Of a stretch of DNA of 64,000 bases, positions 19,114-56,315 are shown in pieces. Both the position numbers and the translations under genes were made by a program. The notes below the pieces were generated by a model that did not search any database, was not told the origin of the DNA, and saw nothing but the letters and a program-made list of their open reading frames with translations. This stretch comes from Macrostomum lignano (taxonomy: Eukaryota), in contig NIVC01000244.1 in the NCBI GenBank assembly GCA_002269645.1, positions 266,484 through 330,483 on the forward strand, read 5' to 3'. Each line of letters opens with the position of its first letter. The first letter of the stretch is position 1.

Positions 19114-22100
19114 TCACACACTACTGACGCTGCTTCCATTAGCGCCATTCTCGGCCGGTGCCATCGCGTGATCCTCTTCGCGGGTCCATCTGGCCAGCAG
19201 TTCCGGCATCTTCTCGGCCGAGTAGCGGCAGGCCTCAGACAGGCAACGGCAGGCCATCTGGCGGCCTTTCACTCGCCAGTAGCCTTCGCCGTAGTCGAAG
19301 CAGAGCTCCTCGCCAGGCGCCACGGGGGCGCAGGTGAAGAAGCACAAGCTGGGATAGCGCAGGTCCTGATGACTGCCTGGGAAGACGCGCACAGGCCGCA
19401 TGTTCGGCTCGCAGGCGTGGTTAATAAACCTGGCTCCCGTGCCGATTCTCAGCGCGTCGATGCAGGCGCCTGGCGCGGGCGCTCCGCCAACAAGGACGAC
19501 CACCCGATCGCCGGCTTCGCTGGTGGTAGTCTGCAGGTGAGATTCGACGTCGAACAGGTAAGAATCGTCGGCCCGAGAGTCGGCCTCGGTGTCGGTGATC
19601 AACTCGCCCGAGTAGGTGCACACGTAGCCGCCGGTGGGGATGAACTCCCGGGCCCGGAGGCCCCAGCCGCGGCCGTTGTCGGTGAGGAACACGGAGCAGT
19701 TGAAGCGGACTCCGCGCTGCACAACCTGGAGAGCGGAGAGGTTGGTGGTTCGATTTAGAATTCAGTTAGAATTACTCAGAATCGGATTGAGAATTTAAGA
19801 TACAAGCTTTGCACTTGGAGTTTTAGCTTCATGTTCACGATTCATAGTTCAGTATCCCAAAACTTCAGGATTCATAGTTCAGTATCCGAAAACTTCAGGA
19901 TTCATAGTTCAGTATCCGAAAACTTCAGGATTCATAGTTCAGTATCCGAAAACTTCAGGATTCATAGTTCAGTATCCCAAAACTTCAGGATTCGTATTTT
20001 CAGTATCCCAAAACTTCAGGATTCATAGTTCAGTATCCCAAAACTTCAGGATTCATAGTTCAGTATCCCAAAACTTCAGGATTCATAGTTCAGTATCCCA
20101 AAACTTCAGGATTCATAGTTCAGTATCCCAAAACTTCAGGATTCATAGTTCAGTATCCCAAAACTTCAGGATTCATAGTTCAGTATCCGAAAACTTCAGG
20201 ATTCATAGTTCAGTATCCCAAAACTTCAGGATTCATAGTTTAGGATCCGAAAACTTCAGGATTCATAGTTCAGTATCCGAAAACTTCAGGATTCATAGTT
20301 CAGTATCCCAAAACTTCAGGATTCATAGTTTAGGATCCACTACTTCAGGATTCATAGTTCAGGATCCACAACTTTGGGATTTATAGTTCAGGATCCAAAA
20401 CTTCAGGATTCATAGTTCAGTATCCGAAAACTTCAGGATTCATAGTTCAGTATCCGAAAACTTCAGGATTCATAGTTCAGTATCCCAAAACTTCAGGATT
20501 CATAGTTTAGGATCCACTACTTCAGGATTCATAGTTCAGGATCCACAACTTTGGGATTTATAGTTCAGGATCCAAAACTTCAGGATTCATAGTTCAGTAT
20601 CCGAAAACTTCAGGATTCATAGTTCAGTATCCGAAAACTTCAGGATTCATAGTTCAGTATCCGAAAACTTCAGGATTCATAGTTCAGTATCCGAAAACTT
20701 CAGGATTCATAGTTCAGTATCCGAAAACTTCAGGATTCATATTCAGTATCCGAAAACTTCAGGACTCATAGTTCAGTATCCCAAAACTTCAGGATTCATA
20801 GTTCAGTATCCGAAAACTTCAGGATTCATAGTTCAGTATCCCAAAACTTCAGGATTCATAGTTTAGGATCCAGAACTTCAGGATTCATAGTTCAGGATCC
20901 ACAACTTTGGGATTTATAGTTCAGGATCCAAAACTTCAGGATTCAAGACTTCAGGATTCATAGTTCAGGATCCAGAACTTTGGGATTCATAGTTCAGGAT
21001 CCCAAAACTTCAGGATTATTAGTTCAGGATCCAGAACTTCAGGATTCATAGTTCAGGATCCAGAACTTCAGGATTCATAGTTCAGGATCCAGAACTTCAG
21101 GATTCATAGTTCAGGATCCAGAACTTCAGGATTCATAGTTCAGGATCCAGAACTTTGGGATTTATAGTTCAGGATCCAGAACTTAAGGGCTCATAGTTCT
21201 GGATCCCAAAACTTCAGGATTATTAGTTCAGGATCCCAAAACTTCAGGATTATTAGTTCAGGATCCCAAAACTTCAGGATTATTAGTTCAGGATCCAGAA
21301 CTTCAGCATTTTAAAATTTGCGATCAGCCAAGGTAAAAACTCATCCAACTCGTACCCGATTCTTGCAGTTAGCCCAGCAGGAGCACAGCGGGCTGCACTC
21401 GAAGATGCAGGCCTCACTTGAGTGGCAGTCAAGAAAGTCTTCGGTCAGGCAGCCGGCGCTATCATAGGCGGCGCATTTGGACATTCGAACGCAGGGACAT
21501 CCGTCGGCGCTGTCGCATCGGCCATCGCGACAGTCGCAGGTGACAATGGTGGCCGATCGGTCCACGGGCAGGTGAGGCGATTCTCGAAGCTCTTTACAAT
21601 AGAAAAACTCAGGCGGCTCAACATCTGGATTGTGCGAGTAGAGCGGCAGCGGCAGGGCCTCGGTGCCGCGGGACAGGTCGCGGTGGAGCAGAGTCTCCGG
21701 CGTAGGCAGGTTGTCCGCTTCAGCTGCTCCGTTGGCTGGCGAACCTGAGGCGCCAGCGACCGCGGCAGCGGCGGCTGCGGCGGCGGCCGCCTCCATGCGT
21801 TGACGAAGTTGAAGGTCGCGGCAAAGTTCTACGGGCGTTTCGCGCTTCTTATTTACGGCGGTGGGATCGGCGCCGGCCAGGCAGAGGGCGAATGCGGCCC
21901 GATGGTGGCCGTGGGCGCAGGCCAGATGGAGGGCCGTGTCGCCGCACAGGTCGGGCTGGTTCGGGTTGCAGCTGCAATTGTTCGGCATCAGCATCGGGTA
22001 TTATTGGCTCAAGGCTATGGATTTATGGCTAAAGGATGCTTGCTAATTTATTCAAAACGGGAGGACTGCGAGCTTCTTGACGCAACGAAATCATGCTACG

Positions 22101-23798
22101 CCTTGGAGTTTTGGTATTTACGCCGGTCGTGGACATTAATCAGAGTTACCCTGATTAATTAATACATCGCCCCAGAATCGCATCAGATGACACAGGTAAA
22201 ATAGGAAAGATGTGACTCTGAACGACTTTAAAACCAAGTATAAGTCGTCAAAGAGTCAAATTGAAGCATTTTATTGCAGTCTGCAACTCTGAAACGACCC
22301 TGGGAGCCGTATAGTCGTACTTGAGGCGTGCGCTAGAGTCGCTTTAGAGTCACTGAGTTCTGTTTGAAGCGCAGTTGCGTCGCTTGATGAATCAGGGTCA
22401 TCAGCGCCATCACAATGATTCTTGGGACGACTCTTTAGAGATTCTACAACTCACGTGACGCACTTATGACGCAACAGTCGCTTTTTCGTTGCATTAGACG
22501 CGTTTAAGCTGAAGCTGCTCTACCAAATAGCTACAGATCGCGGTCCAGCCTCACCCTTTCGCTAGCAGAGCAGTGACCAGCCCGGGCTTGTCAAACCGCA
22601 GCGCCGCCAGGTGCAACAGCGACCGGCCGTCCCGGTCAACCCGGTGCGGACTGGCGCCCCAGTCCAGCAGGCGGACCAGGCAGTCGGCCTGGCCGCTCTC
22701 CGCCGCGCACATTGCCGGAGTCCAGCCGCCGAGATCCGGCCGGTCCAGTAGGCCCGGCCAGGCGTCGAACAGGCTGCGCAGGAAGCTGCACCAGCCGTGC
22801 ACGGCGGCCATGTGCGCCGGCGTGTGTCCGCCCAAATCGGCAGCGTTGGCGTCGGCGCCGGCCGACAGCAGCAGCCGGGCAACAGACTGGCTGCCCTTCC
22901 TTGTGGCCAGCAGCAGCGGAGAGCGCCGGCTGTAGTCGAGACAGTCGGCATCGACCCTGGCGGCCAGGAGCAGCTGGGCCAGGGGCACGCAGTCGGACAG
23001 TGCGCAGGCGTGCAGCAGACAGCGGCCTTTGCGCTTCGGATAGCGCTGGTGCGGGCTGGCTCCGCTGTGCAGCAGCAGGCGGGTCGCTTTGCGGAAATTA
23101 CCGGCGCTGGCGGCCCGCCAAAGGCGCTCGGCGGCGTCAGGCGGCGGCCGACGGGCCGGCATGGCGGAGGCCAGCAGGCCGGCGTGGGAGCCGTCCAAGA
23201 CTTGGTCTGCCAGCTGCTGCTCGCCGTCAGAGGATTGATCGTCGTTGTCGTCGGCGCTGACGCGGCTGCTGTTGTTGAGCTCTGTGGATCTCACTGCTTC
23301 CGACTGCTCGCTGCCGCTGGCTTTGAACTGCACCACCTGGCACGGGGTGGGGCCCTCCTGGCCGCAGTGGGGGCAGAACACCTGAAAAATGATATGAAGC
23401 TATAATAAACACCGAACCGAAATTCCCATACTTAAATCTGATTAGTTACAGTCTCATGACTCCATCACCTGTTGAGTAGACTCGCACCTGGGCGCGCACT
23501 CTAAATGGCACAGGTGGCTAACTCCGTTAGAACCGGCCTGGCACAGGTAGAACCGGCCAGTATGGCAGAACTGTCCGCAAGCCGGACAGACCAGGTGCTG
23601 GCGCCAGGCGGCCAGGTGCTCTCGGCACAGCAGAGCGGGCGCTGCGGCCGCCTCCTGGCAGGTGAGCAGCTGGTCCAGCTGGCAGACTGCAGCCAGACAG
23701 ATGGCGGGCTCGGCGCCAGCCGCCACACTCGACTTGCCGGGCAGCAGCTGCGGATGCCAGCACAGGCAGGTGCAGAGCGGGAAGTCAGCCGTGTCCAT
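19114..23798 (-). CDS. EHMT1/2: G9a/GLP-type histone H3K9 methyltransferase (Cys-rich region, ankyrin repeats, pre-SET, SET, post-SET)
   Basis: Exons 23469-23798, 22555-23381, 21356-21971 and 19114-19725 splice in phase. Motifs: FPLCTC...CREH..W.QHLVCPACGQFC..G...VFCPHCG; ankyrins; IFECSPLCSCWANCKNR|VVQRG; GWGLRA; YSGELITDTEADSRADDSYLFD; RFINHACEPN; ELCFDYG; CRCLSEAC. Confidence 0.93.
19835..21305. repeat. 29-30-bp minisatellite (AAAACTTCAGGATTCATAGTTCAGTATCCG), ~1.5 kb
   Basis: Fills the intron between the pre-SET and SET exons; variant blocks recur as a higher-order pattern. Confidence 0.95.
22188..22500. mobile_element. Interspersed repeat rich in ACGACT/AGTCGT motifs; related copy at ~34905-35340
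   Basis: Both copies begin CACAGGTAAAATAGGAA and share GAGGCGTG and GAGTCACT motifs. The second copy has an inverted pair CAGGTAAAATAG (34910) / CTATTTTACCTG (35024). Confidence 0.45.
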
Positions 23799-23996
23799 TG
23801 TAATTCAGCTGCTTATAATAGATAGATTGTCTGTGCCACAATCTACCTGCTGTTTCAGCTGCAAAACAGGCTAAAAGCCAGGTCTGTTTTAGGAATAACA
23901 CTGAGCATCAAGGATAGCAACAACGATTTAGTTTTTTTAGTATTCCCGTAAGTAAGAAATACGCTTAAAAATTAGATAAACATATTCATATTCATA

Positions 23997-24872
23997 GGAG
24001 AGGATTGTAGCCTATAGTGGTTAGAGCGTCGGACTTTCGACTTGAAGGTCGCGGGTTGGATTCCCGATCTCACTCGTGGACACGCGTGGTACCTCGCGGT
24101 TAGGGCTACTGGTTTTGCTAAGGATTTACTAGTGGATTTATTAGTTTACTGCTTGGTAGAATCGCTGCCACCAGGTTCCTGCTTTCTCTAATTCTGGTAT
24201 TTAGATTTAAAGAATTGAGTCAGGACACCAAAGATTATAGTTAACAGTAAAAAAAAGTATTTAATAATAAGAGAACTGCGTACAAAAGGTTATTTTACAT
24301 TGTCTACCTCCAAAACCATATACACAATCTATCATTACGTTAATTCCTAACTTTATTCCCCGTTATTGTGCTTTGGGCAAGACTCCCAGTTAATTCAGAG
24401 GCAAGACTCCTCTTGTGCAATCCCTATTTAGTTTTCCCCTTTCTTTTCCTTTTCTTACCGAATTCCTTGTTATTCGCAAGACGCGCAAGCAGGAGATGCT
24501 TTTCCAAGAGCCCAACTGCTCTGTATTTCTAAAGGATCCCGAAAACTAGCGATCTACCCCCGCACCAATTATTTCCCCGGGTTAAAACTACTCGTACTGA
24601 TAGTAGGCAAAAAGCATATTTCCCCGCAACTAATTCTCGTTCCTAAAATAATGCCCTACTACACTCGGAACAATTTGTGTTCTTGAGCAAGACACTTAAC
24701 TCTGCATTGCTTCAGTTCACCCAGCTGTAAAATGGGTGCCAGCATTAGCTGGGGTAATTGAGGGTGTGTGCGGCGGCCCCCCAGTCCTTGGACTGAACAG
24801 CCGTACGCAGCCTTCAGATGCGCCGCGCAAAAGCTGCGGCTGAGCTTTCGGTTGCACATCTGCCCAATCGAT
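23997..24872 (+). mobile_element. tRNA-derived CORE-type SINE, interrupted by a solo LTR
   Basis: A-box TAGTGGTTAGAGC and B-box-like GGTTGGATTCC; after the insert, TTCTTGAGCAAGACACTTAACTC...CAGTT...CTGTAAAATGGG closely resembles the CORE domain of MIR-type SINEs. Matches copies at 47055-47333 and 49855-50020. Confidence 0.8.
24077..24663. mobile_element. Solo LTR (587 bp) nested in the SINE
   Basis: TG...CA termini flanked by the 4-bp direct repeat CTCG (24073-76 and 24664-67). Removing it restores colinearity with the uninterrupted SINE copy. Confidence 0.75.
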
Positions 24873-25598
24873 TTAAATTAATTGGCCGGGGGTAGCCGTG
24901 CGATGCACACCTATGAGGGCCAACCCATAGAGGCACAGAGAGAGTGTACATGCCTGGCGATTAAAAAGTCAAAGTACACCCGGTGTGAGCTTGTGTATGA
25001 GTGCGTGACTGTGTACAGCATTAGCGCGCTTGCATGTCAGGCTCAGGAGTCAGCGGAATGGGCAGACGTTGTCGCCGAAGGCGTTGCACCAGAGTTCCCG
25101 CAGCCCTCCTGCATTGATTAGGTACTCAGCAAACCTATGATGACTGATAACAGGCTACTGATAAATGAAAAGATTAGCACAGAAGAGACAGTTACTGCAA
25201 CAAGGCGAAAAATTGCATGGCTATTCATACATCAATATTTAATAACTACACTCTAGTAGACGAAATGCGGCATGATATGAAGGCATACACAGACGGATTT
25301 TTAATAAAGGTTTTATTAACAACAACATTTACGTAAGAGTTAATCACACAAAATGACAGATGAATATTATTTTTATTCGTAAACTGAACTAATTTTTGTA
25401 CAATTAGATGACCTACTAGTCATTTTTTGCTCAAAAATGCTACTGAAAATAAACATTATTACACTATCGCAGCAGAATAAAATGGAAGTTTAAGCTGCGT
25501 ACTAACCGCGGCCAGCCATGCTTAACTTATGTGAACTTTCATGTTAGAAGTTCAAGGGTTGGAGAGCATGAGAACCACAATGGAGAGAGCAATCAATT

Positions 25599-27104
25599 CT
25601 AATCCTGCGGTTGCCGCAGTCTCCGCAGCGCCTCGGCCACCACTGCTCGACACTCCTCGGAGCCGCTGCTCAGCCTGGCGTAGTCCTCGGCCGAGCGGCC
25701 CCTGGCGTCCAGCTGGCTCGGATCGGCGCCTCCGCCGCCCTCCGACCGCGGCAGGAGCAGCAGCTGCACTAGCTCTGACTGGCCCTCGCGACAGGCCAGC
25801 TGCAGCGGCGTCACCCGATCGCGGGTGCCGCCAGTCGAGTCCGCAGCGCCGGCGTCAGGAAGCAACCTCAGCAGGTAGCGGCACAGCTCGGTTTGGCCAC
25901 AAACGGCCGCGTGATGCAGGCAGGTGTAACCGGCCGAATCCCAGCGATCGGCGCCAACTCCGCCGACAATGTCAAGAATGACGCGCAGACAGGCCAGGCT
26001 GCCGGCTTTGCAGGCCTCCATAGCCGGGGTGCAGCCGCACGAGTCGGCTGCGTTGGCCAGCTCCGGCCGGCCGGACAGCAGCTCGGACAGTAGGCCGGCG
26101 TGTCCGTGCAGAGCCAGAGTGTGTGCCGGGGTCCGACCGTTGCGAGCCGGCCGATCAGCCTGTCCGGGATCGGCGGCCAGCAGGAGCCGAACGCAGGCGG
26201 GCTGGCCGACACGGCAGGCCAGGTGCAGCGGTGTCCAGCCGTCCTTATTGACCAGGCCGGGCCGGGCCCCGTGCGACAGCAGCAGGCGCAGCATCGGCTC
26301 AAACGGCTTGGCGCTGGCCAGCATCAGCGGAGTCCAGTCGGCCCGTTTTAACGGGTCAACTGGCACCCTGCGGCACGCGGGTAGGTGGGATGTGTCTGGT
26401 TAGTAAGATTCTCTAACATTTGTGTCCGAAAGTGAGATTCGAACTCAATTAACATGGCTTCAATCGCTGAGTGGCACTGATCGATGACAGGAGTGATCCA
26501 TAGGGAGTCCTCAGTGACTGACCGGCGAATAAGGTTCACTGACCCCCGAGCACGCACACGCGCTCACACAGGTGCACATCGTCAAGCACGTAATGTACAC
26601 ACTGTGTGAATCACAGGCAACCCCAGGCCGATTTACGTGCGCAAGCCCCAAATGAATGCGGCCTGAGAAAGGAATCGAACAACTGGTACATGTACTTTTG
26701 TCCCGCTCTAATTTAGAGTCAATTTTCACCCTTAATTCAACAATGCTCAACAAGCAGCACCTGGCAACCCGTAGCAGCCAATCAGCGGCGGCCAGGGCGT
26801 CGGCCTGCGCCGCTTCGTGTAGCGCCCGTTTGCCGTCAAAATTCGACTGTCCGGCAAAGTCGGCGCCCCTGGCCAGCAGGTAGTCAAGCAACCGGACACT
26901 GTCCGACCGGCCAGACAGGGTAACGACGGTGTCGCCGGATCCGGGATGGTGCTCCGACAGCCACCAGGCGGACTGGCAGCTGTCAGCTTCGGTGGATTCG
27001 CCGGCAACTCGATCCTCAACGACGAAGGCGTCGAAATCGCCCTGCTGAGCCAGACGGAGCAGCCGCTCCAGCTGACGGCCGCGACTGTCGCGTTGCTTGC
27101 GCGG
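25599..27104 (-). CDS. ANKRD16: Ankyrin repeat domain-containing protein 16 orthologue (no genomic ATG found)
   Basis: Exons 26761-27104 and 25599-26367 splice in phase (VAR|VPVD). SGDTVV...DGKRALHEAA, VDPLKRADWTPLMLA, NKDGWTPLHLA and DSCGCTPAMEA match my recollection of human ANKRD16 (GDTLLH, YKRPLHEAA, VDCLKKADWTPLMMA, KNKDGWNSFHIA). Confidence 0.85.
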
Positions 27105-27121
27105 CTGGAATAGGGCGGGAT

Positions 27122-27972
27122 TGGGACTGATGGGATCGATGAGGGACTGGTGATGGGATTGATGAGAGGCTGGTGATGGGATTGATGAGAGGCTGGTGAT
27201 GGGATTGATGAGGGGCTGGTGATGGGATCGATGAGGGACTGGTGATGGGATTGATGAGAGGCTGGTGATGGGATTGATGAGAGGCTGGTGATGGGATCGA
27301 TGAGGGACTGGTGATTGGATTGATGAGAGGCTGGTGATGGGATTGATGAGGGGCTGTTGGTGGGATTGATGAGGGGCTCGTGGTGGGATTGATGTAGGGC
27401 TGATGGTGGGATTGATGAGGGGCTGATGGTGGGATTGATGAGGGGCTGGTGATGAGATTGATGAGGGGCTGGTGATGGGATTGATGAGGGGCTGGTGATG
27501 GGATTGATGAGGGGCTGGTGATGGGATTGATGAGGGGCTGGTGATGGGATTGATGAGGGGCTGGTGATGGGATTGATGAGGGGCTGATGGTGGGATTGAT
27601 GAGTGGCTGGTGGTGGGATTGATGAGGGGCTCGTGGTGGGATTGATGAGGGGCTGATGGTGGGATTGATGAGGGGCTGGTGATGGGATTGATGAGGGGCT
27701 GGTGATGGGATTGATGAGGGGCTGGTGATGGGATTGATGAGGGGCTGGTGATGGGATTGATGAGGGGCTGGTGATGGGATTGATGAGGGGCTGGTGATGG
27801 GATTGATGAGGGGCTGGTGATGGGATTGATGAGGGGCTGGTGATGGGATTGATGAGGGGCTGGTGATGGGATTGATGAGGGGCTGATGGTGGGATTGATG
27901 AGGGGCTGATGGTGGGATTGATGAGGGGCTGGTGATGGGATTGATGAGGGGCTGGTGATGGGATTGATGAGT
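27122..27972. repeat. 23-bp minisatellite (GATGGGATTGATGAGGGGCTGGT), ~37 copies
   Basis: Ends ~18 nt before the ANKRD16 acceptor and explains the spurious 489-aa ORF. Confidence 0.95.
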
Positions 27973-28747
27973 AAATGCATAATCCAGATAAAAAGATGGA
28001 AACTGAAATTAATAAATGGACAATTTAAGCTGCTCCTGCTAGTTAAATTGACATTTCATATTGGTTAGTAAAAGCTGTAATTTTTTATGGTGATGCAAAT
28101 GCTAGCATCTTTACACCCTATGCACATAAAAAATAATATATTTAACGTATTCAAGCAAAAATGAATAGCAATGAACAGTGCAGATAAATCCATTTTCAGA
28201 ACGATCAGCAAACAAACAGAAAAGACAGTTAGCGGTCGGTGAAATTGGAATTCAAAAGCCAAAAAATGAACACTATATCATATAGTTATCGCACAGTTCC
28301 TTATATGATAATGAGAATGCAATAAGTTTAACTTGCGATTCACAGAGCCTACTATGAGTAGGCTATAGTTGTCTACAAAAGAAATAGGCTGTACACGATT
28401 TAGCGAGCCTGAACCCGGCCTAGCAACACATGTTTACCATAGAAACAACACTTATATGATGTTATTAGCAGCGTAGAATATTTTTGTTACCATCTAAAAA
28501 CGCTTCACAATACAGTTTTGAAGGCATAATACCGGCAAATTCTCCAGACTTTAATCCCATTGTATCATGCGAAAATTTAAAAAGTTTAATTGAAACTTTA
28601 TCTAAAACTTTTTTACTAAAATGGACTATTAATTTGCAGTATTGCTGATCAATCAACTCTGCACATTAAGACTGTTGCTTTCTGGTCTACGTGGTCATAC
28701 GAGTATATGGGCTTTATTAATATTTAGAATGCCTTGTGCTATCAACA

Positions 28748-29179
28748 GATACTAGAAAAACTAGACGGGCCACTCAGCACATTTGCGTGTAAGCTACTTT
28801 CAGTTCAGTAGTAGGTTAGACAGAAGCATTTTAATGTATTTTTAAATCCAAGGCTCATTTATTGGCTCTTACCCCCCCCCGCTAAGCCCCCCAACCGCGC
28901 CTTTCCACACTTCCTCAATTTTTATTGCCTTTCTCTCGGAATTCTAGCCTAAAGCTGCCATGTACATTTCAGTGGACTGGCTAATGTACATTATTGCTGA
29001 ACCAATTAGCAAGCTGTTTACGCCTGCAAGCTTTGGGCTTCTAAACTTATCAAAGTCATTTCAGCTGCCTTTATTTTTATGAAATAGCTTATGTATTCTT
29101 CTTTGCTACTGAACTGTAAGTAGAAAGCTGTTTTACTTAGTATATGTGCCTGAGTGGCCCATCAAGTTATTTTAGTATC
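28748..29179. mobile_element. MITE with ~65-bp imperfect TIRs
   Basis: Left GATACTAGAAAAACTAGACGGGCCACTCAG...CTACTTTCAGTTCAGTAG; reverse complement of right GATACTAAAATAACTTGATGGGCCACTCAG...CTACTTACAGTTCAGTAG. Related copies at ~47768 and ~55006. Confidence 0.7.
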
Positions 29180-29365
29180 CAATTATTCACTTTAAATTTC
29201 AGTACAGTAGATAAAAATGTAGACCGATCAGGTAGACGGCGAGAGTAACCATGATTTATATAGTAATAAAACAACCTCGTCATCTAATTAGTAATAAAAA
29301 ATTCCAAACATTAGAATATTAATTAATGAGTTTAAATACAGAGAGTAGAGGGCATATCTCGGACA

Positions 29366-44196: not shown

Positions 44197-44254
<58 letters not shown>

Positions 44255-44415: not shown

Positions 44416-44458
<43 letters not shown>

Positions 44459-44860: not shown

Positions 44861-44902
<42 letters not shown>

Positions 44903-45002: not shown

Positions 45003-45035
<33 letters not shown>

Positions 45036-45040
45036 CTACG

Positions 45041-45074
<34 letters not shown>

Positions 45075-45296: not shown

Positions 45297-45346
<50 letters not shown>

Positions 45347-45552
45347 GCTAACTAACTATATAGCTAGCTAACTAACTAGCTAACTAACTAACTAACTAGC
45401 TGACTAGCTAACTAACTAGCTAACTAACTAACTAGCTAACTAACTAACTAGCTAACTAACTAACTAGCTAACTAACTAACTAGCTGACTAGCTAACTAAC
45501 TAACTAGCTAACTGACTAACTAACTAACTAGCTAACTAACTAACTATCTAGG

Positions 45553-45598
<46 letters not shown>

Positions 45599-45776
45599 GC
45601 TAACTAACTATATAGCTAGCTAACTAACTAACTAACTAACTAACTAGCTAACTAACTAACTAGCTAACTAGCTAGCTAACTAACTAACTAGCTAACTAAC
45701 TAACTAGCTGACTAGCTAACTAACTAACTAGCTAACTGACTAACTAACTAACTAGCTAACTAACTAACTATCTAGG

Positions 45777-45826
<50 letters not shown>

Positions 45827-45918
45827 GCTAACTAACTATATAGCTAGCTAACTAACTAACTAACTAGCTAACTAACTAACTAGCTAACAAACTAGCTAAC
45901 TAACTAACTAGCTAACTG

Positions 45919-45951
<33 letters not shown>

Positions 45952-46152
45952 CTACGTAACTAACTAACTAACTAACTAACTAACTAGCTAACTAACTATA
46001 TAGCTAGCTAACTAACTAACTAACTAACTAGCTAACTAACTAACTAGCTAACTAACTAACTAGCTAACTAACTAACTAGCTAGCTAACTGACTAACTAAC
46101 TAGCTAACTAACTAACTAGCTAACTAACTAGCTAACTAACTAACTATCTACG

Positions 46153-46190
<38 letters not shown>

Positions 46191-46400
46191 GCTAACTAAC
46201 TATATAGCTAGCTAACTAACTAGCTAACTAACTAACTAGCTGACTAGCTAACTAACTAGCTAACTAACTAACTAGCTAACTAACTAACTAGCTAACTAAC
46301 TAACTAACTAACTCACTAACTAACTAGCTGACTAGCTAACTAACTAACTAGCTAACTGACTAACTAACTAACTAACTAGCTAACTAACTAACTTTCTACG

Positions 46401-46454
<54 letters not shown>

Positions 46455-49400
46455 GCTAACTAACTATATAGCTAGCTAACTAACTAACTGCACCAGCAGA
46501 TGCACAAAGCTTCGCACCCTGTTGCTGCTGCGGCTGCTGCTGCTGAGACACCTGCCGCCGGTAGCAAGCCACAGCCAGCAGGCAATTGGCCAGAGCAAAT
46601 CCGATCTGCGACCCTAGCGTAGAACAGCCGGACGCCACCGCAGGCTGGGGAGCAGGACACGACAGGCGGTGCAGCAGCTGCTCAATACCGACAGCGGCCG
46701 CCTCAGCCAGCGGGCGGGCATGCGTGGCCAGAGCGAGGCTGATGCCCGAGGCTAACGCGCCGCATAGAGCGTCAACTAGGTCGCCGGCACATTGCAGTTG
46801 GCCGTTGCTGGCGTCCAAGGAGGCTGGCGCGATGCTCGGCAGGCAGCGGGCGGCGTGGGTCAGCGAGCGGGCCAAGGAGGCGGCCAGACGGTCCGGGAGA
46901 AGGCCGCCACCAGCTGGCAGGTTGGGCACAATGCGCAGCAGTGCGGACTGAGCATGAGGGGAAGTTTGGACAATTTCGATTCAAATACGACAAACTATTT
47001 TTATAAGGTAATACATGTATGTGTAAGTCGAGTTTTAACAATTCCTAATAAATAATAATAATAATTGATTACACCTGCCCCGATTGGGCCAGATGTGCAA
47101 CCGACAGCTCAGCCGCAGCTATTGCGCGGCGCATCTGAAGGCTGCTTACGGCTGTTCAGTCCAAGGACTGGGGTCGCCACACACACCCTCAATTACCCCA
47201 GCTAATGCTGGCACCCATTTTACTGAACTGAAGGAATGCAGAGTTAAGTGTCTTGCTCAAGGATACAAAATTTTCCGAGTGTGTCGAGAATCGAACCCAC
47301 GACTTTTCAGTCCCTCTAGGCTACAACCCTCTAGAAACTCCTAAGGAACTATACAGAGAGAAGTAAACGATCTGCCTAATGCGCAAAAATCATCTTAAAT
47401 GCTGTTAACCTGTCTCAAAAAACTTATTAGCTTCTTAGTACATTTTAATTCGTATTAAGCCGATGCAGAGCCAGATGTGTGCAAGTATTCTCCATCTCTC
47501 ACCAGTCTGATGCACTCTGCAGACCGGATAACGGCTCCAGCTGAGTAGTTTTCCAATCCGGCGCCAACTAAATTGTCAACAATGCTGGCTAAAATCGATT
47601 GAATCTGCGGCTGCTGCACAGCTGAGGGCGACAAGTTGTTGAAGTTGAGCCACAGATAGAGGCAGTAATGCCGCTCGGCGAACGGGTACTGCTCAACTAT
47701 GGAGAGCTGAGGGCAGAGAGAGCAGTTAATTAGTTACTTAAATAATTAATTGCTAGGCCAAACTACAGATACTACCGTAGAATAACTATAGACGGTCCAC
47801 TCAGCACATTTGCATGTAAGCTACTATTCAGCTAAGTAGTAAGTAAAAACAGAAGCATTTTAATGTATTTCAAGACAAGACTAGATTACAGGTTCTAACC
47901 CCCCCCCCCCACATCTCTGCCTTGCCTCACCGCCCAATTTTTATTGCCTTCCTTTGTGTGCCAAGCTTAAAGCTGCTGCCATGTACATTTCAGTGGCACT
48001 GGCTAATTTACATTATGGATGAACTTTGTAGCTTGGATTATTCTAAACTTATCAATTCATTTCAACTGCCTTTCTTTTCATAAAATAGCGTCTGTATTCT
48101 TCGCTACTACTGAAATGAAAGTAGGCTGAACACAATTTACTACTTACACTCAGCAGCATGTTCTGCACGCTATGTAAGCTTTTTGCGCCACACTCTATAC
48201 TTTCTACTTATCAGTAGACGAACTCTGACTACAAGAGTATAAATGCTAGTCAAAAAATATTTTGCAACAATATCGGCTTACAACATCGACATCGCTAGCG
48301 AATTTAACAATCCGAGCAAACAGTCGGCCGGCCAGTTGGCAGCGCTGCTCGGTAGCGCAGCGCCTGTAGTCGAGGCTAGCCAGGCTATTGGCCAAAAGGC
48401 CGACCCATTGTGCGCAGAATGAGGCAGACGAGTATCTAATTAAGGTAGTTTTTTGGGGGGCGATTTAACTGATATTTACTGTGTTTTCAACATTTGGAGC
48501 TGTGCTTTATAAAACAAACACAAGCATATCTACCCTATCCTTTACACTGCCTGAGGGGGCACCTCTGAAATGTCATATTTCATCTCCAAAAAGCAGCTTC
48601 TTTCACGATTCCGACACTGCATCCCCGACACTTCATATCTCAGACACTTTTTATCTCCGACACTTCATCTCTCCGACGCTTCATACCTCCGACACTATAT
48701 CTCCGACACTTTATATCTTCGACATTTAATATCTCCGATGCTTCCTACCTCCGACACTACATCTCCGACACTTTATATCTCCGACACTTCATATCTTTGA
48801 CGGTTCATACCTCCGACACTATATCTCCGACACTTAATATCTCCGACGCTTCATACCTCCGACACTATATCTCCGACGCTTCATACCTCCGACACTATAT
48901 CTCTCCAACGCTGCATACCTCCGACACTATATCTCCGACGCTTCATACCTCCGACACTGTATCTCCGACACTTCATCTCTCCGACAATATATCTCTCCAA
49001 CGCTTCATACCTCCGACACTATATCTCCGACGCTTCATACCTCCGACACTATATCTCCGACACTTCATCTCTCCGACGCTTCATACCTCCGACACTACAT
49101 CTCCGACACTTTATATTTCCGACGCTTCATACCTCCGACACTATATCTCCGACGCTTCATACCTCCGACACTATATCTCCGACGCTTCATACCTCCGACA
49201 CTATATCTCCGACGCTTCATACCTCCGACACTATATCTCCGACACTTAATATCTCCGACGCTTCATACCTCCGACACTATATCTCTGCAACGCTTCATAC
49301 CTCCGACACTATATCTCCGACGCTTCATACCTCCGACACTATATCTCCGACGCTTCATACCTCCGACACTATATCTCCGACACTTAATATCTCCGACGCT

Positions 49401-52400
49401 TCATACCCGACACTATATCTCTCCAACGCTTCATACCTCCGACAGTATATCTCCGATGCTTCATACCTCCGACACTATATCTCCGACGCTTCATACCTCC
49501 GACACTATATCTCCGACGCTTCATACCTCCGACACTATATCTCCGACGCTTCATACCTCCGACACTATCTCTCCAACGCTTCATACCTCCGACACTATAT
49601 CTCCGACGCTTCATACCTCCGACACTATATCTCCGACACTTAATATCTCCGACGCTTCATACCCGACACTATATCTCTCCAACGCTTCATACCTCCGACA
49701 CTATATCTCCGATGCTTCATACCTCCGACACTATATCTCCGATGCTTCATACCTCCGACACTTTATGTCTGAACTTCATATCTTCGACAAGCTTAAGGTT
49801 AGGGCTAGGGTTAGACTGCTAAACTGATTTATCGGAGATATGAACTGTCGATCATACTCAAAACAATTTTGTGTACCTTAAGCAAGACACTTAACTTTGC
49901 ATTGCTTCAGTTCTCCCAACTGTAAAATGAGTTACCAGCAATAGCTGAGGTAATTGAGGGCATATGGCGACCCCCCTCAGGACTGAACAGCCGTACGCAG
50001 CTTTCAGATGTGCCGCGCCACTAACCTATTTTTTACCGTTTTCAGATTTATGTTAAAACCTACCTGAGCAGAAAGCAGAGCACATCAGAAGCAATTAGGT
50101 ACAGCACAGCGGACGAATCGGGATTGAATAAGATCTTAATCACGACCTTCTCCTGCAAGAAAAAAGACCTATAATTAGTATTCTGATTACTTTCACGCAA
50201 TAGGCCGGACTATATTCTTACCAGGTAGGACACTAGACTATTAGGCAGGTGACAGGCGCTGGTAATGACGGCCAGCACGGTGCAATGGTAATAATCTAGG
50301 CCTGAATGAGCATGGCCAATGTCTAAGGCGCAGTCAAGTAGAGAAAGCTTCGGTGCTGCAATCATTGTCGATAGGGTGGCAGTTTAGTTTTCATAAACCG
50401 ACGTCACAAACATCTGAATATATTAGTACCCTAATTACCTTGCTCAAGAGTCCTGATTAACGAGTCGTAAAGGTTCGATTCTACAAGTAGGTCGCTTTTG
50501 TCCAACCAGAGGCGGCTGTCGTCCAATTCTGAGTAGTATAAAGGTAAACATATCACTTGATTGCCATTTGAACTCTGTTAACGAGCCTGGGACTATTTGC
50601 ACTAATGAGACTGGGACTACTTGCACTAATGAGACTGGGACTATTTGCACTAATGAGACTGGGACTACTTGCACTAATGAGACTGGGACTATTTGCACTA
50701 ATGAGACTGGGACTACTTGCACTAATGAGACTGGGACTATTTGCACTAATGAGACTGGGACTATTTGCACTAATGAGACTGGGACTATTTACACTAATGA
50801 GACTGGGACTATTTGCACTAATGAGACTGGGACTATTTACACTAATTAGACTGGGACTATTTACACTAATGAGACTGGGACTATTTACACTAATGAGACT
50901 GGGACTCTACTCCCTGAGACTGAGTCGGCAACTGCATATATACCAAAACAGCTCACCCGGCCGTTTAGGCAGCAGCGCGAGTACATAGCACTTGAGCTCA
51001 ATCAGCGCCAGGCACAGGGCATCGGCAGGCCAGTCGTCAGCTTGGCCAGCCTGAAAGGCCAGCCGCTGCAGTTCCGGCAGGCCGGCTGCGATAACCGCCT
51101 GAGCAAACGCGGCGCTGCCTAGCAACCGTTCGACAGCAACTAGAGGCGAACTGCGCAGCTTAGCGGACAGCAGCTCGGGATTAACAGCCTCGTCGCTAGT
51201 AGACCGATCGGCTAAGCGGCGGAACAGAACTCGAAGCATAGCTAGCGTGTAAAATAGCTGTGACAGACAGGCGGATAGCTGGCTGTGGTATTCGGTTAGC
51301 AGAGTTACCAGGCATTTCACAAAGAAGCTGAATATCTTGGCGTCCTGAGGGCTGCCCCCGGTCTACAGTTTGTAACAGACAGAATTCATTAGGCCATCCT
51401 AATTTTTACAACTATTAAAATTTTCAATACAAGGCAAACTTAATGAGAAATTACCTGAATAATCTGTCCCATCATTTGCCTAGTGATTGACAATAGTTTA
51501 GCAACGATGTCGTCAATGTTAACGGAGTCGTGCAACAGGCAGATGTGCGATTCTGAAAGTGTGCTGCGAAAGAAACAACAAGTTTCTTTTGTTAAATACA
51601 GCTAGGCATTTACACCTGGGCAATTAGCATTTGGGATCAAGCTATCAACATTTTAAGGTGGATAAATATCGCTTTATGGATGGTCATAGCTACATGACTC
51701 ATTGATGGTCATAGCTACATGACTCATTGATGGTCATAGCTACATGACTCATTGATGGTCATAGCTACATGACTCATAAATGGTCATAGCTACATGGCTC
51801 ATGAATGGTCATAGCTAAATGACTCATGGATGGTCATAGCTAAATGACTCATGGATGGTCATAGCTAAATGACTCATGGATGGTCATAGCTAAATGACTC
51901 ATTGATGGTCATAGCTAAATGACTCATGGATGGTCATAGCTACATTGTCAGTGTTTTTCTCACCGAATAAGCGACTTCCAAGCAGTCACAGTAATACGCG
52001 GTTCCAACTCGAAGACAGAAGAAGCCAGAGCTGTCAGGGCGTAGGTCACTGCAAGTAGATTAAAGTGAAAGTTGACTTAAATAATTTATGTAAGGTTAAG
52101 CGGTAATAGGAAACCGAAGAACATGAGACCTCCCCAGGCTACGCACCGGCAGAAAGGTCATCTGCTGAAAAGTAGTCACGCATCTGCTGCGAATCAATGC
52201 TGTCTAGGCACTGAATACAGGCCTGCAATACAAAGTAGAACTTGGCGTAGTTTTCTAGATATAGAATTAGCTACGATGAGGTGCCAGATGACAGGTGGAA
52301 GACAAAACTAATAACTTACCGTGAGTGCCGTATAAGTGGCCTTGAAAAGGGAGCCGAGTATTGCGGACACCTGCTGCATTTGGGAGCCGTAGATCTTCGT

Positions 52401-54236
52401 ACTTCTCTGTAATTTCGGGGTATTCTAATGTGTATTCATTGTCAGAACGTGATGGAATAACCAACGAAACTTAACATTCCAAATGGAATTTGGAAGATTC
52501 TAAATGGGACCTGCAAGATTCCGAATGGGACCTACAAGATTCCGAATGGGACCTGCAAGATTCCGAATGGGACCTACAAGATTCCGAATGGGACCTACAA
52601 GATTCCGAATGGGACCTACAAGATTCCGAATGGGACCTGCAAGATTCCGAATGGGACCTGCAAGATTCCGAATGGGACCTGCAAGATTCCGAATGGGACC
52701 TGCAAGATTCCGAATGGGACCTGCAAGATTCCGAATGGGACCTGCAAGATTCCGAATGGGACCTGCAAGATTCCGAATGGGACCTGCAAGATTCCGAATG
52801 GGACCTGCAAGATTCCGAATGGGACCAACAAGATTCCGAATGGGATCTATAAGATTCCGGATGGGATCTGCAAGATTCCGAATGGGATCTACAAAATTCT
52901 AAATGGGACCTGCAGAATTCCGAATGGGATCTACAAGATTCTAAATGGGACGTGCAGAATTCCGAATGGGATATTCCGGCCTTTGCAACGCACCTGACAG
53001 TGCAGGTAGGAGGCGACAAACAGGCGAAACGCTCTCTCCAACCCCACTAGCAGGCTGTCAGGAAGGCGGCTCAGCGCTGGCGGGCTGATCAAACTGTACA
53101 GCTTCTGCAGGCTGCCAGTGAGGTCAAGAGCGTCGCGTAGGAAGCTGGCCGCCTCGGCGCCGCACTCCGGCGAGTCCGACTCGGCCAGCATGCGCACCTC
53201 CAGGCAGGCGAAAAATTCGCCCACACCCTGGCAGACTCGGGCAACCCGGCCGGAGATGAACTGGGCCAGGCTGGCCACGTCCGAATCGGCGAAGCTGGAC
53301 TGCCGCTGCAGCAGCTCCGACTGGCGCACGTGATCTGCAGGTGGGAAAACCCAGGCTTCTTTTAAAAGCTGATTTGCTGCTTTCCCCCATTTCTTCGATA
53401 CGATTTGTCCCAGTCCATCCCTGCTGTCTACTCCACACTACCTATTCTACCTCTACTGTCTACTCTACACTGCCTATTCTACCTCTACTGTCTACTCTAC
53501 ACTACCTATTTTACCTCTACTGTCTAATCTACACTGCCTATTCTACCTCTACTGTCTACTCTACACTGCCTATTCTACCTCTACTGTCTACTCTACACTG
53601 CCTATTCTACCTCTATTGTCTACTTTACACTACCTATTCTACCTCTACTGTCTACTCTACACTCTTCATGCTACCTCTACTGTCTACTCTACACTGTCTA
53701 TTCTACACTCCCCATTCTACCTCCTACGTACGGTACGGTAGACATCTACATTCTAGTCTACTTTTCACGCTACCTCTACTATCTACTCTGCACTGTCATG
53801 CTTACCTCTATCTTCCCTAATCTTTCTGTATGCTACCCCTACATTTCATTTAGTGTCTACTCAGCAACCAAAAAGCACAAGAATATTATCTGTAACTTAT
53901 AAACATACTAAATAAAAGTACTTACCAAACAATGATTTATATGCAGGCTCGGACACCGTCATCATTCAATTATAGTTGCAAATTCATAAGCTTACTGAAA
54001 TTTAACAGGGACAATATTCCGCATTAACTTATGTGCAGTGACTGAATTGGAAGAAACATATTATTATTGTTCGTAACAATTAAAGACACGAACAAATAAG
54101 ACAACATTAATCCACCAACTTCATCTAAGGATTCCACTCGAGAGCTTGCATCATCTGTTTCGGGATTGCACGTCCATGCGCGCAGAACTAACTCAATGAG
54201 AAAAACTTTGATTTGCTTCAAAATGCTGTTCTGTCC
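43023..54236 (-). CDS. FIRRM: FIRRM / C1orf112 (FIGNL1-interacting protein, FLIP) orthologue, at least 14 exons, ~910+ aa
   Basis: In-phase GT-AG exons: 53926-53965, 52994-53334, 52320-52406, 52147-52222, 51964-52048, 51455-51563, 50957-51362, 50222-50355, 50064-50152, 48282-48435, 47503-47706, 46494-46947, 43663-43683, 43023-43561; probable further 5' exon 54116-54236. Colinear matches to recalled human C1orf112: SYLHCQRSTKIYG...LGSLFKATY ~ TFVHCKNSESVYS...LQALFKEAY; TAWKSLIR ~ NTWKFIIK; IASDVLCFLLRYSSASFCA ~ LAMDAWCFLARYGTAELCA; PPAKKPR ~ PYAKRAR. Confidence 0.85.
43765..46490. repeat. 2.7-kb compound (CTAA)n/(CTAG)n satellite with higher-order structure
   Basis: Fills the FIRRM intron starting right at the donor at 46493; recurrent marker words CTATATAGCTAG, CTATCTACGTAA and CTATCTAGGTAA. 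Confidence 0.97.
47055..47333 (-). mobile_element. tRNA-derived CORE-type SINE, near full length, with (ATT)n tail
   Basis: Minus strand: B-box GGTTCGATTC, CORE-like CCTTGAGCAAGACACTTAACTC, 3' part shared with the 24664-24872 copy, ATTATTATT tail. Confidence 0.8.
47768..48135. mobile_element. Diverged copy of the 28748-29179 MITE family
   Basis: Shares CCACTCAGCACATTTG...GTAAGCTACT, CAGAAGCATTTTAATGTATTT and GCTGCCATGTACATTTCAGTGG. Confidence 0.65.
48620..49770. repeat. 30-bp minisatellite (CTCCGACACTATATCTCCGACGCTTCATAC), ~38 copies
   Basis: FIRRM intron; dimeric unit built on CTCCGAC. Confidence 0.95.
49855..50020 (+). mobile_element. Truncated CORE-type SINE copy
   Basis: CCTTAAGCAAGACACTTAACTTTGCATTGCTTCAGTT...CTGTAAAATGAG...GGACTGAACAGCCGTACGCAGC. 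Confidence 0.75.
50585..50905. repeat. 24-bp minisatellite (GACTGGGACTATTTGCACTAATGA)
   Basis: About 13 copies, intronic. Confidence 0.95.
51678..51945. repeat. 25-bp minisatellite (GATGGTCATAGCTACATGACTCATT) containing ATGACTCAT
   Basis: About 10 copies, intronic. Confidence 0.95.
52490..52975. repeat. 21-bp minisatellite (GATTCCGAATGGGACCTGCAA)
   Basis: About 23 copies filling a FIRRM intron. Confidence 0.95.
53430..53820. repeat. 32-bp CT/CA-rich minisatellite (CTACCTCTACTGTCTACTCTACACTGCCTATT)
   Basis: Intronic; degenerates toward the right end. Confidence 0.9.
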
Positions 54237-55005
54237 CTTTATTGTTGTCAATAAAACATGAAATGAAGCCGAACGCAACAACCAATACGTAAGAAAATTC
54301 AACAGGAACAAAAACAAAGTCAACGAGAGCTATGGCGAATGGCGACAAGTGTATTTTTAGCGCCCGAAAACATATGAGGGGTCGACAACACCAAGACACC
54401 TCAAATAAATATTTTGTCTAAATTTGATTAGATAGATTAGTTCAGATCTCATCTAGTCTTTGTTCACTGGTTACCGCAAACTACTACAGTAAGCTGAGAT
54501 CCTCTAGTTTTTGTTCCCTAGTTACCAAACCGTAAAGTACTTTGTAGGAACTCCTTGCACTTGAAAAAAAAATCTTTCAGACACAAATGACTTAATAAAT
54601 AGAAAAAAACGTATTCAGCTTTTTCTCAAGCGTTCAAACATACAAAAATAATGAACTATTTCCGATGAATAAAAAACACCACTGACTGAAAGAGATAATA
54701 AAAAAATGGATCAAAGAGAAAATAATAAAATCATGGAGCAAATTAATACAATACAGAGATAGATTAAAGTTACACAATAATATAATTTTTTCAATCAAGC
54801 AACAAGTACCTTGCGGGATATCTATAGTTTCACATTTAAAATACAGTGTAAGGTATACTGTACCAATATTAATGTATTCATATAGCTAAGAACATGTTTT
54901 CAATCTGCGAATTTATTCGTCGTAGCTAGCACTTGGTCCCTGTATAGTTAAGAAAGACAACAAAAGGGAATGGAGACCGAATTTAAACTCCAGGTCAAAC
55001 CACAG

Positions 55006-55480
55006 ATACTAGAAAAACTGGAAGGTCAATCAGCAAAGCTGCGTGTAAGCTACTTTCAGTTCAGTAGTAAGTTGAACAGAAGCCCCCTAGGCTGAGTTTC
55101 GCCCATCTGACTTAACCTCTCTCCTTACTGCTCTCGTATTGGCTGAGCTAGATTGGGCCTGCCCCCTAGGCTGAGTTTCGTCTGTCTAACTTTAACCTCT
55201 CTCCTTACTGCTCTCTCATTGGCTGAGCTAGATTTGGCCTGCCCCCTAGGCTGAGTTTCACCCGTCTGACTTTAACCTCTCTCCTTACTGCTCTCTGATT
55301 GGCTGAGCTAGATTGGGCCTGCCCCCTAGGCGGGGTTTCGTCCGTCTTGCGTTCACTTGCCGCAAAACCCCCGAGGAAAAGAAATAAAATTTTAGATGCC
55401 ACATTAAATCTAAGTGGCACTGCGCAGACAAACTACTAAATAAAGTGTAGTCGTGTAGACCTTCTGCCTTTTCACAACAA
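55006..55480. mobile_element. MITE-family copy with an internal 80-bp tandem triplication (55083-55335)
   Basis: Left end matches the 28748 TIR (GATACTAGAAAAACT...GTAAGCTACTTTCAGTTCAGTAGT); unit GCCCCCTAGGCTGAGTTTC...GATTGGGCCT occurs 3 times; right end is degenerate. Confidence 0.55.
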
Positions 55481-55799
55481 TTGCGAGTGGCATATTTAGT
55501 TATTCCAGATACTGTGGTCTAGACACACCCAAAAGCATAGTACAACTACCGGTAATCACTTTCATGGAAACAGTTTAAAGCAGAACACCAGCTGGGATTT
55601 TCGGACCAACAATAGTCTTTAGACTGTAATAAATACTAAACTGGAAAATTCTTCAAGTGATATAAAGTCCAGCTTCACCCTGTTAATCTCTAGAAAACCC
55701 AACGGAAGGAACTGAATGGGATGTCTATCTATTGCATTCGGATGAAACCGGAGCCTTAATTTTTATCGTTTCCAACTAAGACACAAAAAAAGCAGTTGA

Positions 55800-56315
55800 C
55801 TAGCTCTTGCTCTGCTCCGGCTTTTCTTCTCGCGGCGACGGCGATGAAGGCGGAGACGGCGACGGCGACGCTGGCACGAGCAGCAAGCCGGGCTTGTACG
55901 ACGGCGGCGAGCGCGGCGGTAGAAGACAAAACACTTTGCCACCGCTGCCAGCTCCGGAGTCAGCGGACAGAGCGTCGTCAGCGGCGACAGTCGGACCCGG
56001 CGCTGCCTTCATCGACGACGATGAAGTTGACGCTGAACGGTGCAACTGCAACTGCGGCTGTGGCTGCTGCTGCTGTTGTTGTTTACGACGCCGACGCGAA
56101 AACGACAATCCGCCACCATTAACAAACGACGCCGGTTGACCGCCGTCAGTGAGGGCAAAGTCGTGCTGAATCCAGCGACTATCCGGCTGCTGGCATCTGC
56201 CTACCGCCGGCTGACGGTCGGTGGCCAGCACTGGGCTAGGCGGCGCCCGCTTGGTGTACGGGCTGTTTAAAAACACCAGCTGTGGCGGCTCGTTGCGCCG
56301 GCGCTTCCGGCGCAT
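55800..56315 (-). CDS. Intronless, low-complexity 171-aa protein resembling RHINO (9-1-1 clamp interactor)
   Basis: MRRKRRRNEPPQLVFLNSP ~ human RHNO1 MPPRKKRRQPSQKAPLLFHQQP; SRWIQHDF ~ TSWVSPDF; LLVPASP ~ VLVKDTP, in the same order. Motif-level similarity from memory only. Confidence 0.5.
   Translation of the reverse strand: MRRKRRRNEPPQLVFLNSPYTKRAPPSPVLATDRQPAVGRCQQPDSRWIQHDFALTDGGQPASFVNGGGLSFSRRRRKQQQQQQPQPQLQLHRSASTSSSSMKAAPGPTVAADDALSADSGAGSGGKVFCLLPPRSPPSYKPGLLLVPASPSPSPPSSPSPREEKPEQSKS

Follow-up and report, generated by a model that had tools for sequence, protein, structure and literature searches.

Within a 64,000-nucleotide stretch of contig NIVC01000244.1 of the flatworm Macrostomum lignano (assembly Mlig_3_7, GCA_002269645.1; contig positions 266,484 to 330,483; the whole stretch is called the window below and all coordinates are counted from its first nucleotide), five genes follow each other on the minus strand: RHINO-like, FIRRM-like, IPO13, ANKRD16-like and G9a. 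A preliminary description had taken them for one candidate operon resolved by spliced leader (SL) trans-splicing. Its gene order and single orientation were confirmed, and so were its outer limits, 19114 being the G9a stop codon and 56315 the RHINO-like ATG; the cluster, however, is in our judgement probably a same-strand group of five genes holding one small SL-resolved operon and not a single five-gene operon. Annotation and sequence support an operon of two genes only, IPO13 and ANKRD16-like, or perhaps of three. What stood of the operon claim is therefore the transcriptional unit shared by IPO13 and ANKRD16-like and the SL support for ANKRD16-like and G9a, whereas a single polycistron of five genes is made unlikely by three different unit names and by a copy-specific spacer of more than 5 kb (gap 2) between FIRRM-like and IPO13.

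Evidence for co-transcription of the pair comes from the nomenclature of the Mlig_3_7 annotation, in which assembled transcripts are treated as transcriptional units, units at least 95% identical share a prefix, and polycistronic units are cut into genes by TBONE at SL and poly(A) signals. IPO13 (PAA87211.1, BOX15_Mlig004038g2) and ANKRD16-like (PAA87210.1, BOX15_Mlig004038g3) share the prefix Mlig004038, and their counterparts in a paralogous copy of the cluster (copy B, see below) share the prefix Mlig020371 (g1/g3). Since the two genes are unrelated in sequence and are yet named after one unit in each of two paralogous copies, no fewer than two of the assembled units must hold both of them. 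The.gN suffix was also considered as an indicator of gene order within a unit, a use which we rejected, as suffixes number duplicate copies as well. RHINO-like and G9a bear other prefixes, namely Mlig011415 (read from the RHINO-like paralogue, Mlig011415g1) and Mlig013872, respectively. IPO13 and ANKRD16-like thus very likely form a real SL-resolved dicistron, which is already implicit in the public annotation.

The upstream gene of this pair comprises five exons (37266-36574, 34790-34371, 33201-32671, 31213-30293 and 29842-29366) encoding 1013 amino acids, and its identity is secure: human importin-13 is matched in the PDB (2x19_B) with E=5.9e-110 as against E=3e-24 for transportin-3, and Pfam recognises the Xpo1 and TPR_TNPO3_IPO13 domains. 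A search for homologous proteins outside M. lignano with IPO13 exon 1 found none. ANKRD16-like (25599..27110 including its acceptor) has two exons (27104-26761 and 26367-25599). Aligned with a hand-entered sequence of human ANKRD16, it is colinear, with 36% identity over 330 amino acids (E=1e-45) and with the N-termini of both proteins aligned; generic ankyrin proteins also score high, and the ANKRD16 identity is a good lead and not a reciprocal-best assignment.

It is the beginning of ANKRD16-like that points most clearly to trans-splicing. Exon 1 has no ATG, the first genomic ATG not occurring before residue 130 or so, and the exon begins immediately after ctattccag, so that an SL joined at the TTCCAG acceptor (27110-27105) would place its terminal AUG in frame and give a protein starting M-PRKQRDSRGRQLERLL. 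Copies B and C carry the acceptor unchanged. The deposited protein PAA87210.1 (368 amino acids) is labelled 'partial' at its 5' end and starts at 27098, 6 nucleotides past TTCCAG; in both paralogues the coding sequence (CDS) is deposited as 5'-partial with this start. The spacer upstream of this acceptor (gap 3, 27105..29365, 2261 bp) consists of repeats to 54%, comprising a minisatellite of 37 units of 23 bp (27128-27971), which abuts the acceptor, and a copy of the interspersed repeat R1 (28745-29123). The minisatellite is free of stop codons in all frames, and the reading frame of ANKRD16-like continues through it as far as an ATG at 27980; a transcript reaching further upstream would therefore have yielded a longer open reading frame (ORF), and the 5'-partial state of the deposited transcript-based CDS is what one would expect if the mature mRNA began at the acceptor and received its start codon from the SL. 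A genome-only ORF caller places a spurious, repeat-headed ORF of 489 amino acids at this site (26511-27980).

According to this reading, transcription would start within a conserved block of about 0.5 kb upstream of IPO13 and would cross IPO13 and the 2.3-kb minisatellite-inflated spacer into ANKRD16-like. The IPO13 mRNA would be cleaved and polyadenylated, and the 35-nucleotide SL would be joined at TTCCAG (27105), capping the downstream mRNA and supplying the AUG of ANKRD16-like.

The SL of M. lignano is 35 nucleotides long and ends in ATG, and its acceptors are enriched in the motif [T/C]TNCAG (PMC8629364); all flatworm SLs end in an ATG which is able to initiate translation (PMC12582326). 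In the cluster, this motif ends 30, 40, 0 and 60 nucleotides before the starts of FIRRM-like, IPO13, ANKRD16-like and G9a, respectively. It lies within 60 nucleotides of three of the four independently defined starts, which at a minus-strand background of 0.0026 per nucleotide corresponds to a binomial p of about 0.01, and because of this enrichment the sites are likely to be genuine 3' splice sites, sequence alone being silent on their use in trans. The preliminary description had pointed to seemingly unpaired AG acceptors upstream of RHINO-like, IPO13, ANKRD16-like and G9a, and rightly so: the latter three are embedded in the motif, while plain AGs precede RHINO-like. The consequences of trans-splicing would differ among the sites. 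The IPO13 candidate acceptor (TTGCAG, 37307..37312, 40 nucleotides upstream of the ATG) would, with the SL AUG, open an out-of-frame upstream ORF of 18 codons, and in copy C it reads TTGCTG (CAG to CTG; local coordinate about 9965 of the extracted copy C segment), meaning either that the site is dispensable or that copy C is decaying. At FIRRM-like (TTTCAG, 53995..54000, 30 nucleotides upstream of the ATG and kept in copy B), an SL AUG would run straight into a TAA.

In M. lignano, an operon is called where a trans-spliced downstream gene follows its neighbour at less than 1 kb, repeats being discounted (Ustyantsev & Berezikov 2021, PMC8629364). Operon spacers have a mode of about 100 bp, and 75% of the operons comprise two genes, 18% three and under 7% four or more (PMC8629364). 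We measured the adjusted distances from a candidate AATAAA/ATTAAA signal to the acceptor after masking repeats recognised in the window. From IPO13 to ANKRD16-like this distance is 600-795 nucleotides and hence below 1 kb; from RHINO-like to FIRRM-like it is 916 nucleotides, a borderline value; from ANKRD16-like to G9a (1242-1302 nucleotides) and from FIRRM-like to IPO13 (5239-5403 nucleotides) it exceeds 1 kb. The five-gene set as a whole accordingly falls outside the limit of 1000 bp, within which IPO13 and ANKRD16-like remain. Trans-splicing of the downstream gene is published for G9a; for ANKRD16-like it is suggested by the missing ATG, the 5'-partial CDS and the in-frame acceptor, and for FIRRM-like and IPO13 there are acceptor motifs only.

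The unadjusted CDS-to-CDS gaps of 1834, 5756, 2261 and 1800 bp agree with the figures given in the preliminary description (1.5-1.8, 5.8, 2.3 and 1.8 kb). Its statement that these gaps are largely filled with repeats or transposable elements applies to gap 3 but not to gaps 1, 2 and 4, in which tandem repeats and interspersed repeats found by self-BLAST account for 19%, 3% and 12%; all these percentages are lower bounds, as masking was based on repeats within the window and not on a genome-wide library.

G9a (19114..23864 including its acceptor; PAA87209.1, BOX15_Mlig013872g1) encodes 794 amino acids in four exons (23798-23469, 23381-22555, 21971-21356 and 19725-19114), and its acceptor TTGCAG is found at 23864-23859, 60 nucleotides before the start. 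Precomputed Pfam matches on the identical protein give the order EHMT1-2_CRR, Ank, Pre-SET and SET, and the best PDB match is the SET domain of EHMT2 (E=4e-52); the assignment to G9a/EHMT is secure and the product is predicted to be a histone H3 lysine 9 (H3K9) methyltransferase. Outside M. lignano, a search with the SET exon returned remote matches only. In Supplementary Table 2 of Grudniewska et al. 2018 (PMC5816591), Mlig013872.g1 is listed as TRANSSPLICED and in the class 'Neoblast, stringent' (irradiation-sensitive and S/G2/M-enriched), and among the rows listed it is the only one of the five genes with an entry. G9a is therefore SL trans-spliced and neoblast-enriched according to the published record. 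Its spacer (gap 4, 23799..25598, 1800 bp) contains AATAAA signals at 25377 and 25317 and a copy of the interspersed repeat R2 (24661-24870), and has no Rfam match; a tRNA-like stretch suspected at about 24.0-24.1 kb was not confirmed by ARAGORN or Rfam. G9a may belong to the operon as its third cistron, the connection having disappeared when transcripts were assembled, or it may be an independently transcribed, trans-spliced gene.

Upstream of the pair the situation is different. Gap 2 (37267..43022, 5756 bp, 31% GC, 3% detectable repeats) contains neither an ORF of 100 amino acids or more nor an LTR (long terminal repeat) or TIR (terminal inverted repeat) structure, so that no coding capacity of a transposable element was recognised in this copy. 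Three copies of the cluster exist in the assembly: copy A in the window, copy B on NIVC01003342.1 and copy C towards the end of NIVC01000244.1, the last of which carries FIRRM, IPO13 and ANKRD16 at 531-552 kb, about 230 kb away from the window (266-330 kb). Copies A and B agree to 95-98% in gaps 1, 3 and 4. From gap 2, in contrast, only the last 0.5 kb or so before IPO13 (37307-37773) is common to all three; the 2.4 kb adjoining FIRRM-like are common to A and C, and the remainder is copy-specific. In copy B, this gap exceeds 10 kb and contains, on the same strand, ORFs for the gag, protease-reverse transcriptase-RNase H and integrase of an LTR retroelement. This element looks full-length, carries a long extra ORF, occupies about 100-9400 of the extracted NIVC01003342.1 segment and stops some 0.5 kb short of the IPO13 ATG. 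Because gap 2 tolerates insertions while its proximal 0.5-kb block is conserved, the comparison argues for an IPO13 promoter separate from FIRRM-like. The order of the genes is likewise kept in copies B and C, but as recent duplicates of 95-99% identity they do not provide independent evidence for its conservation.

One deposited protein appears to bridge gap 2. UniProt A0A1I8H7Q6 fuses the C-terminus of FIRRM-like to the N-terminus of IPO13 across several kb, using a weak internal donor; of its segments, the FIRRM part corresponds to copy C and the 24-amino-acid linker to copy B only. As its parts come from different copies, we read it as an artefact on the older ML2 assembly, and a prediction or assembly artefact is what the chimera looks like. 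In parasitic flatworms, chimeric models have been taken as operon evidence, even across several kb (PMC12582326), and A0A1I8H7Q6 resembles these in fusing neighbouring genes over such a distance, but differs from them in being composed of different paralogous copies. The older ML2-based models A0A1I8H7Q6 and A0A1I8FU22 are unreliable at this locus; the latter contains a frame shift and goes under the name 'RAB3GAP2_C domain-containing', which current Pfam does not reproduce.

The two genes at the 5' end of the cluster differ in how well their names are founded. The preliminary description had spoken of five conserved genes, and this is supported for IPO13, G9a, ANKRD16 and FIRRM, whereas RHINO is without statistical support. 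FIRRM-like, which is not annotated in GenBank at copy A, was modelled by a dynamic-programming script based on codon usage and splice signals (43023..53965, 916 amino acids) with 14 exons: 53965-53926, 53334-52994, 52373-52320, 52222-52147, 52048-51964, 51563-51455, 51362-50957, 50528-50439, 50355-50222, 50152-50064, 48435-48282, 47706-47503, 46947-46518 and 43561-43023. The predicted start, an ATGATG mini-exon, equals the annotated CDS start in copy B (local coordinate 12367 of the extracted segment), and exons 12-14 match UniRef A0A1I8H7Q6. A microsatellite, (ACTA)n, of 2.7 kb or about 680 units (43762-46489; GC skew about -0.58) fills most of the last intron. The annotated products of copies B and C (926 and 927 amino acids) have precomputed matches to PF14868 (DUF4487) with E of 1e-5 or better, while a live Pfam hmmscan of the 916-amino-acid model of copy A gave nothing at E up to 1. 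By BLASTP, the model is colinear with human FIRRM (C1orf112, sequence entered by hand), residues 101-558 aligning to 85-546 with E=3e-7, and a phmmer search with its exons against 1.84 billion representative proteins returned two near-identical proteins, both from M. lignano. Earlier Pfam and PDB searches with crude exon concatenations of RHINO-like and FIRRM-like had been negative; support for FIRRM emerged after the 14-exon model and the annotation of the paralogues, and the FIRRM identity of the gene is probable on this comparison of sequences.

RHINO-like (55800..56315) is a single exon of 171 amino acids, found exactly in GenBank and UniRef, with the paralogue PAA51870.1 (BOX15_Mlig011415g1). 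Pfam gave no match at E up to 1, PF15319 included, and the PDB none; BLASTP against human RHNO1, again entered by hand, aligned an unrelated segment with E=0.31. The resemblance is one of motifs and their spacing, that is a basic N-terminus, PxLxF, and RW-I-xx-DF as compared with SWVSPDF at positions 55-61 of the human protein (9-1-1-binding residues), and the name is a lead only. Plain AGs are situated 0, 2, 5, 8 and 12 nucleotides upstream of the ATG (56316-56329), none in a [T/C]TNCAG motif, and an SL joined at tgtcag would place its AUG in frame (MPVAE-M...). The gene stands head-to-head with an annotated gene of 186 amino acids (58585..59373, plus strand), 2.27 kb apart, in copies A and B. 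Human RHNO1 also is arranged head-to-head with its neighbour, FOXM1 (PMC8104967); the flatworm neighbour has no Pfam match and is not recognisable as a forkhead gene. Transcription of RHINO-like would begin in a region of divergent promoters which it has in common with the 186-amino-acid gene. Downstream of it, gap 1 (53966..55799, 1834 bp, 97.8% identical to copy B) contains an 80-bp tandem repeat (55082-55347), an R1 fragment (54992-55083) and a sole AATAAA at 54917, from which the 916 nucleotides to the FIRRM-like acceptor are counted. Most probably, RHINO-like and FIRRM-like each form a unit of their own.

Against this background the competing explanations can be weighed. A single polycistron of five genes, with its promoter lying upstream of RHINO-like and an SL added by trans-splicing to every downstream gene, would account for the co-orientation without any annotated gene in between (five neighbours sharing an orientation has, taken alone, a chance of 1-in-16), for the motif within 60 nucleotides of four of the five starts, for the trans-splicing of G9a and for the existence of a FIRRM-IPO13 chimera; transcriptional units may split at repeats, and copies B and C show the same succession of genes. 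We nevertheless regard it as very unlikely. The unit names are three, the adjusted FIRRM-to-IPO13 distance of 5.2-5.4 kb is five times the published cut-off, gap 2 differs among the copies save for its last 0.5 kb and has grown to more than 10 kb with an LTR retroelement in copy B, the chimera with its copy B linker and copy C FIRRM part is artefact-like, the order of genes in near-identical paralogues is not independent, and operons of four or more genes are rare in this organism. Less likely still, and in our view highly improbable, is the extended form of this idea, according to which all five genes are cistrons of one neoblast-expressed polycistron whose single promoter co-doses an adaptor of the 9-1-1 complex and of polymerase theta-mediated end joining, a factor that disassembles RAD51 filaments, a receptor for nuclear import, ANKRD16 and G9a; if true, it would require read-through of an insertion-prone spacer of 5-10 kb. 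The functional theme proposed for the cluster, joining checkpoint, RAD51, nuclear import and H3K9 methylation, is derived from adjacency alone and is speculative.

A division into two operons, RHINO-like/FIRRM-like and IPO13/ANKRD16-like/G9a, separated by the 5.8-kb gap, finds some favour in the 916 nucleotides between a candidate RHINO-like poly(A) signal and the FIRRM-like TTTCAG and in the trans-splicing of G9a, for which the adjusted 1.24-1.30 kb from ANKRD16-like is an upper bound; a full repeat library could bring both distances under 1 kb. On the other side, RHINO-like and G9a have unit names of their own, SL use at FIRRM-like is suggested by an acceptor motif only, and the RHINO-like poly(A) site is a motif guess located 880 nucleotides past the stop codon, for which reasons we consider two operons quite improbable. 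Unlikely, though to be taken more seriously, is the view that there is no operon at all and that the neighbours are transcribed independently, several of them being trans-spliced monocistronically, with the shared name of IPO13 and ANKRD16-like arising from an assembly artefact or unproductive read-through. About 60% of the trans-spliced genes of M. lignano lie outside operons (PMC8629364), every gap in the cluster is far above the mode of about 100 bp, gap 3 retains about 1 kb of AT-rich unique DNA with room for a promoter, and trans-splicing of ANKRD16-like and G9a needs no upstream cistron. Such a view must, however, explain why IPO13 and ANKRD16-like occur together in both of the independent unit clusters, Mlig004038 as well as Mlig020371, and why this pair fits the published operational definition of a trans-spliced downstream gene behind an adjusted spacer of less than 1 kb.

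Several observations also weigh against the small operon embedded in a cluster of otherwise separate genes, and they do so from both directions. Separate unit names are compatible with co-transcription, since spacers rich in repeats are known as places where transcriptional units break (PMC8629364), and A0A1I8H7Q6 does join FIRRM-like to IPO13, a type of chimera counted as operon evidence in parasitic flatworms. Conversely, the common unit name may stem from the merging of overlapping read-through by StringTie/TACO and not from a productive precursor, and the deposited CDS of ANKRD16-like begins at 27098 rather than at 27104. The v3 table entry Mlig013872.g1 (2366 nucleotides, ANK domains only) may differ from the GenBank v1 transcript model of G9a. 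It should also be noted that all transcript evidence is second-hand, obtained via locus tags and one supplementary table.

The gene models underlying these considerations were built as spliced models from ORFs and GT-AG junctions, followed by an exact look-up against deposited proteins; those of RHINO-like (171 amino acids), IPO13 (1013 amino acids) and G9a (794 amino acids) are identical to M. lignano proteins in GenBank. In the annotation, no further CDS is found between the first and the last of the five genes, which are adjacent on the same strand without an intervening opposite-strand gene. The divergent 186-amino-acid gene sets the 5' limit of any minus-strand unit, with the same arrangement in copy B, and a convergent exon of a rhodopsin-type G protein-coupled receptor (17530..18246, plus strand; Pfam 7tm_1, E=2.9e-7) forms the 3' boundary of the cluster. 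The window has about 47% GC and is rich in minisatellites. Retroelement remnants flank the cluster at 60653-62487 and 12012-13601 (both plus strand), represented by an ORF of 414 amino acids with weak gag/aspartyl-protease matches and by another that encodes an RNase H domain (E=7e-8). Copies of the interspersed repeats are scattered over gaps and introns of FIRRM-like, R1 at 28745-29123, 47778-48124 and 54992-55083 and R2 at 24661-24870, 47081-47282 and 49856-50018, with 75-90% identity between copies in each case; R2 has a look reminiscent of a short interspersed nuclear element, without an Rfam or tRNA match. Searches with Rfam, with ARAGORN and for the SL sequence gave no match.

In C. elegans, operons of the SL2 type are transcribed into a polycistronic precursor, which is then resolved in two steps, by 3' end formation and by trans-splicing of an SL onto the downstream cistron. 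The resolution proposed here is alike in both steps; M. lignano, in contrast, possesses a single SL without SL2 specialisation, and the spacers are kilobases long as compared with about 100 nucleotides. Much closer are the SL operons described for M. lignano itself (Wudarski et al. 2017, PMC5730564; PMC8629364), with the same SL, [T/C]TNCAG acceptors and spacers inflated by tandem repeats. The trans-spliced genes of this class are conserved and neoblast-linked, as is the case here with the neoblast-enriched G9a (PMC5730564; PMC8629364). A five-gene extent would exceed what is annotated, and lower-bound masking leaves three of the four spacers at the cut-off of 1 kb or beyond it, one of them with more than 5 kb. 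That the 3'-terminal AUG of the SL serves as initiator has been demonstrated by experiment for parasitic flatworms (Cheng et al. 2006, cited after PMC12582326); ANKRD16-like likewise is without a start codon of its own and in frame with the SL AUG at TTCCAG, the conclusion being drawn here from the sequence and the 5'-partial CDS. A full-text literature search for the Mlig locus identifiers found no paper.

The probable small operon is an ordinary instance of a class already common in M. lignano, in which about 15% of the genes have been assigned to operons, and it leaves our knowledge of flatworm operons unchanged. Some practical consequences should nevertheless be kept in mind. Genome-only gene finders will truncate or mis-start genes whose start codon is supplied by the SL, and reads will multi-map among the three copies, so that RNA evidence specific to this locus needs positions which discriminate between them. 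If the small operon is real, ANKRD16-like knock-ins or promoter constructs would have to use the region upstream of IPO13, and the pair would provide a worked example of a minisatellite-inflated intercistronic spacer and of an SL-supplied start codon, both of which are already described for M. lignano.

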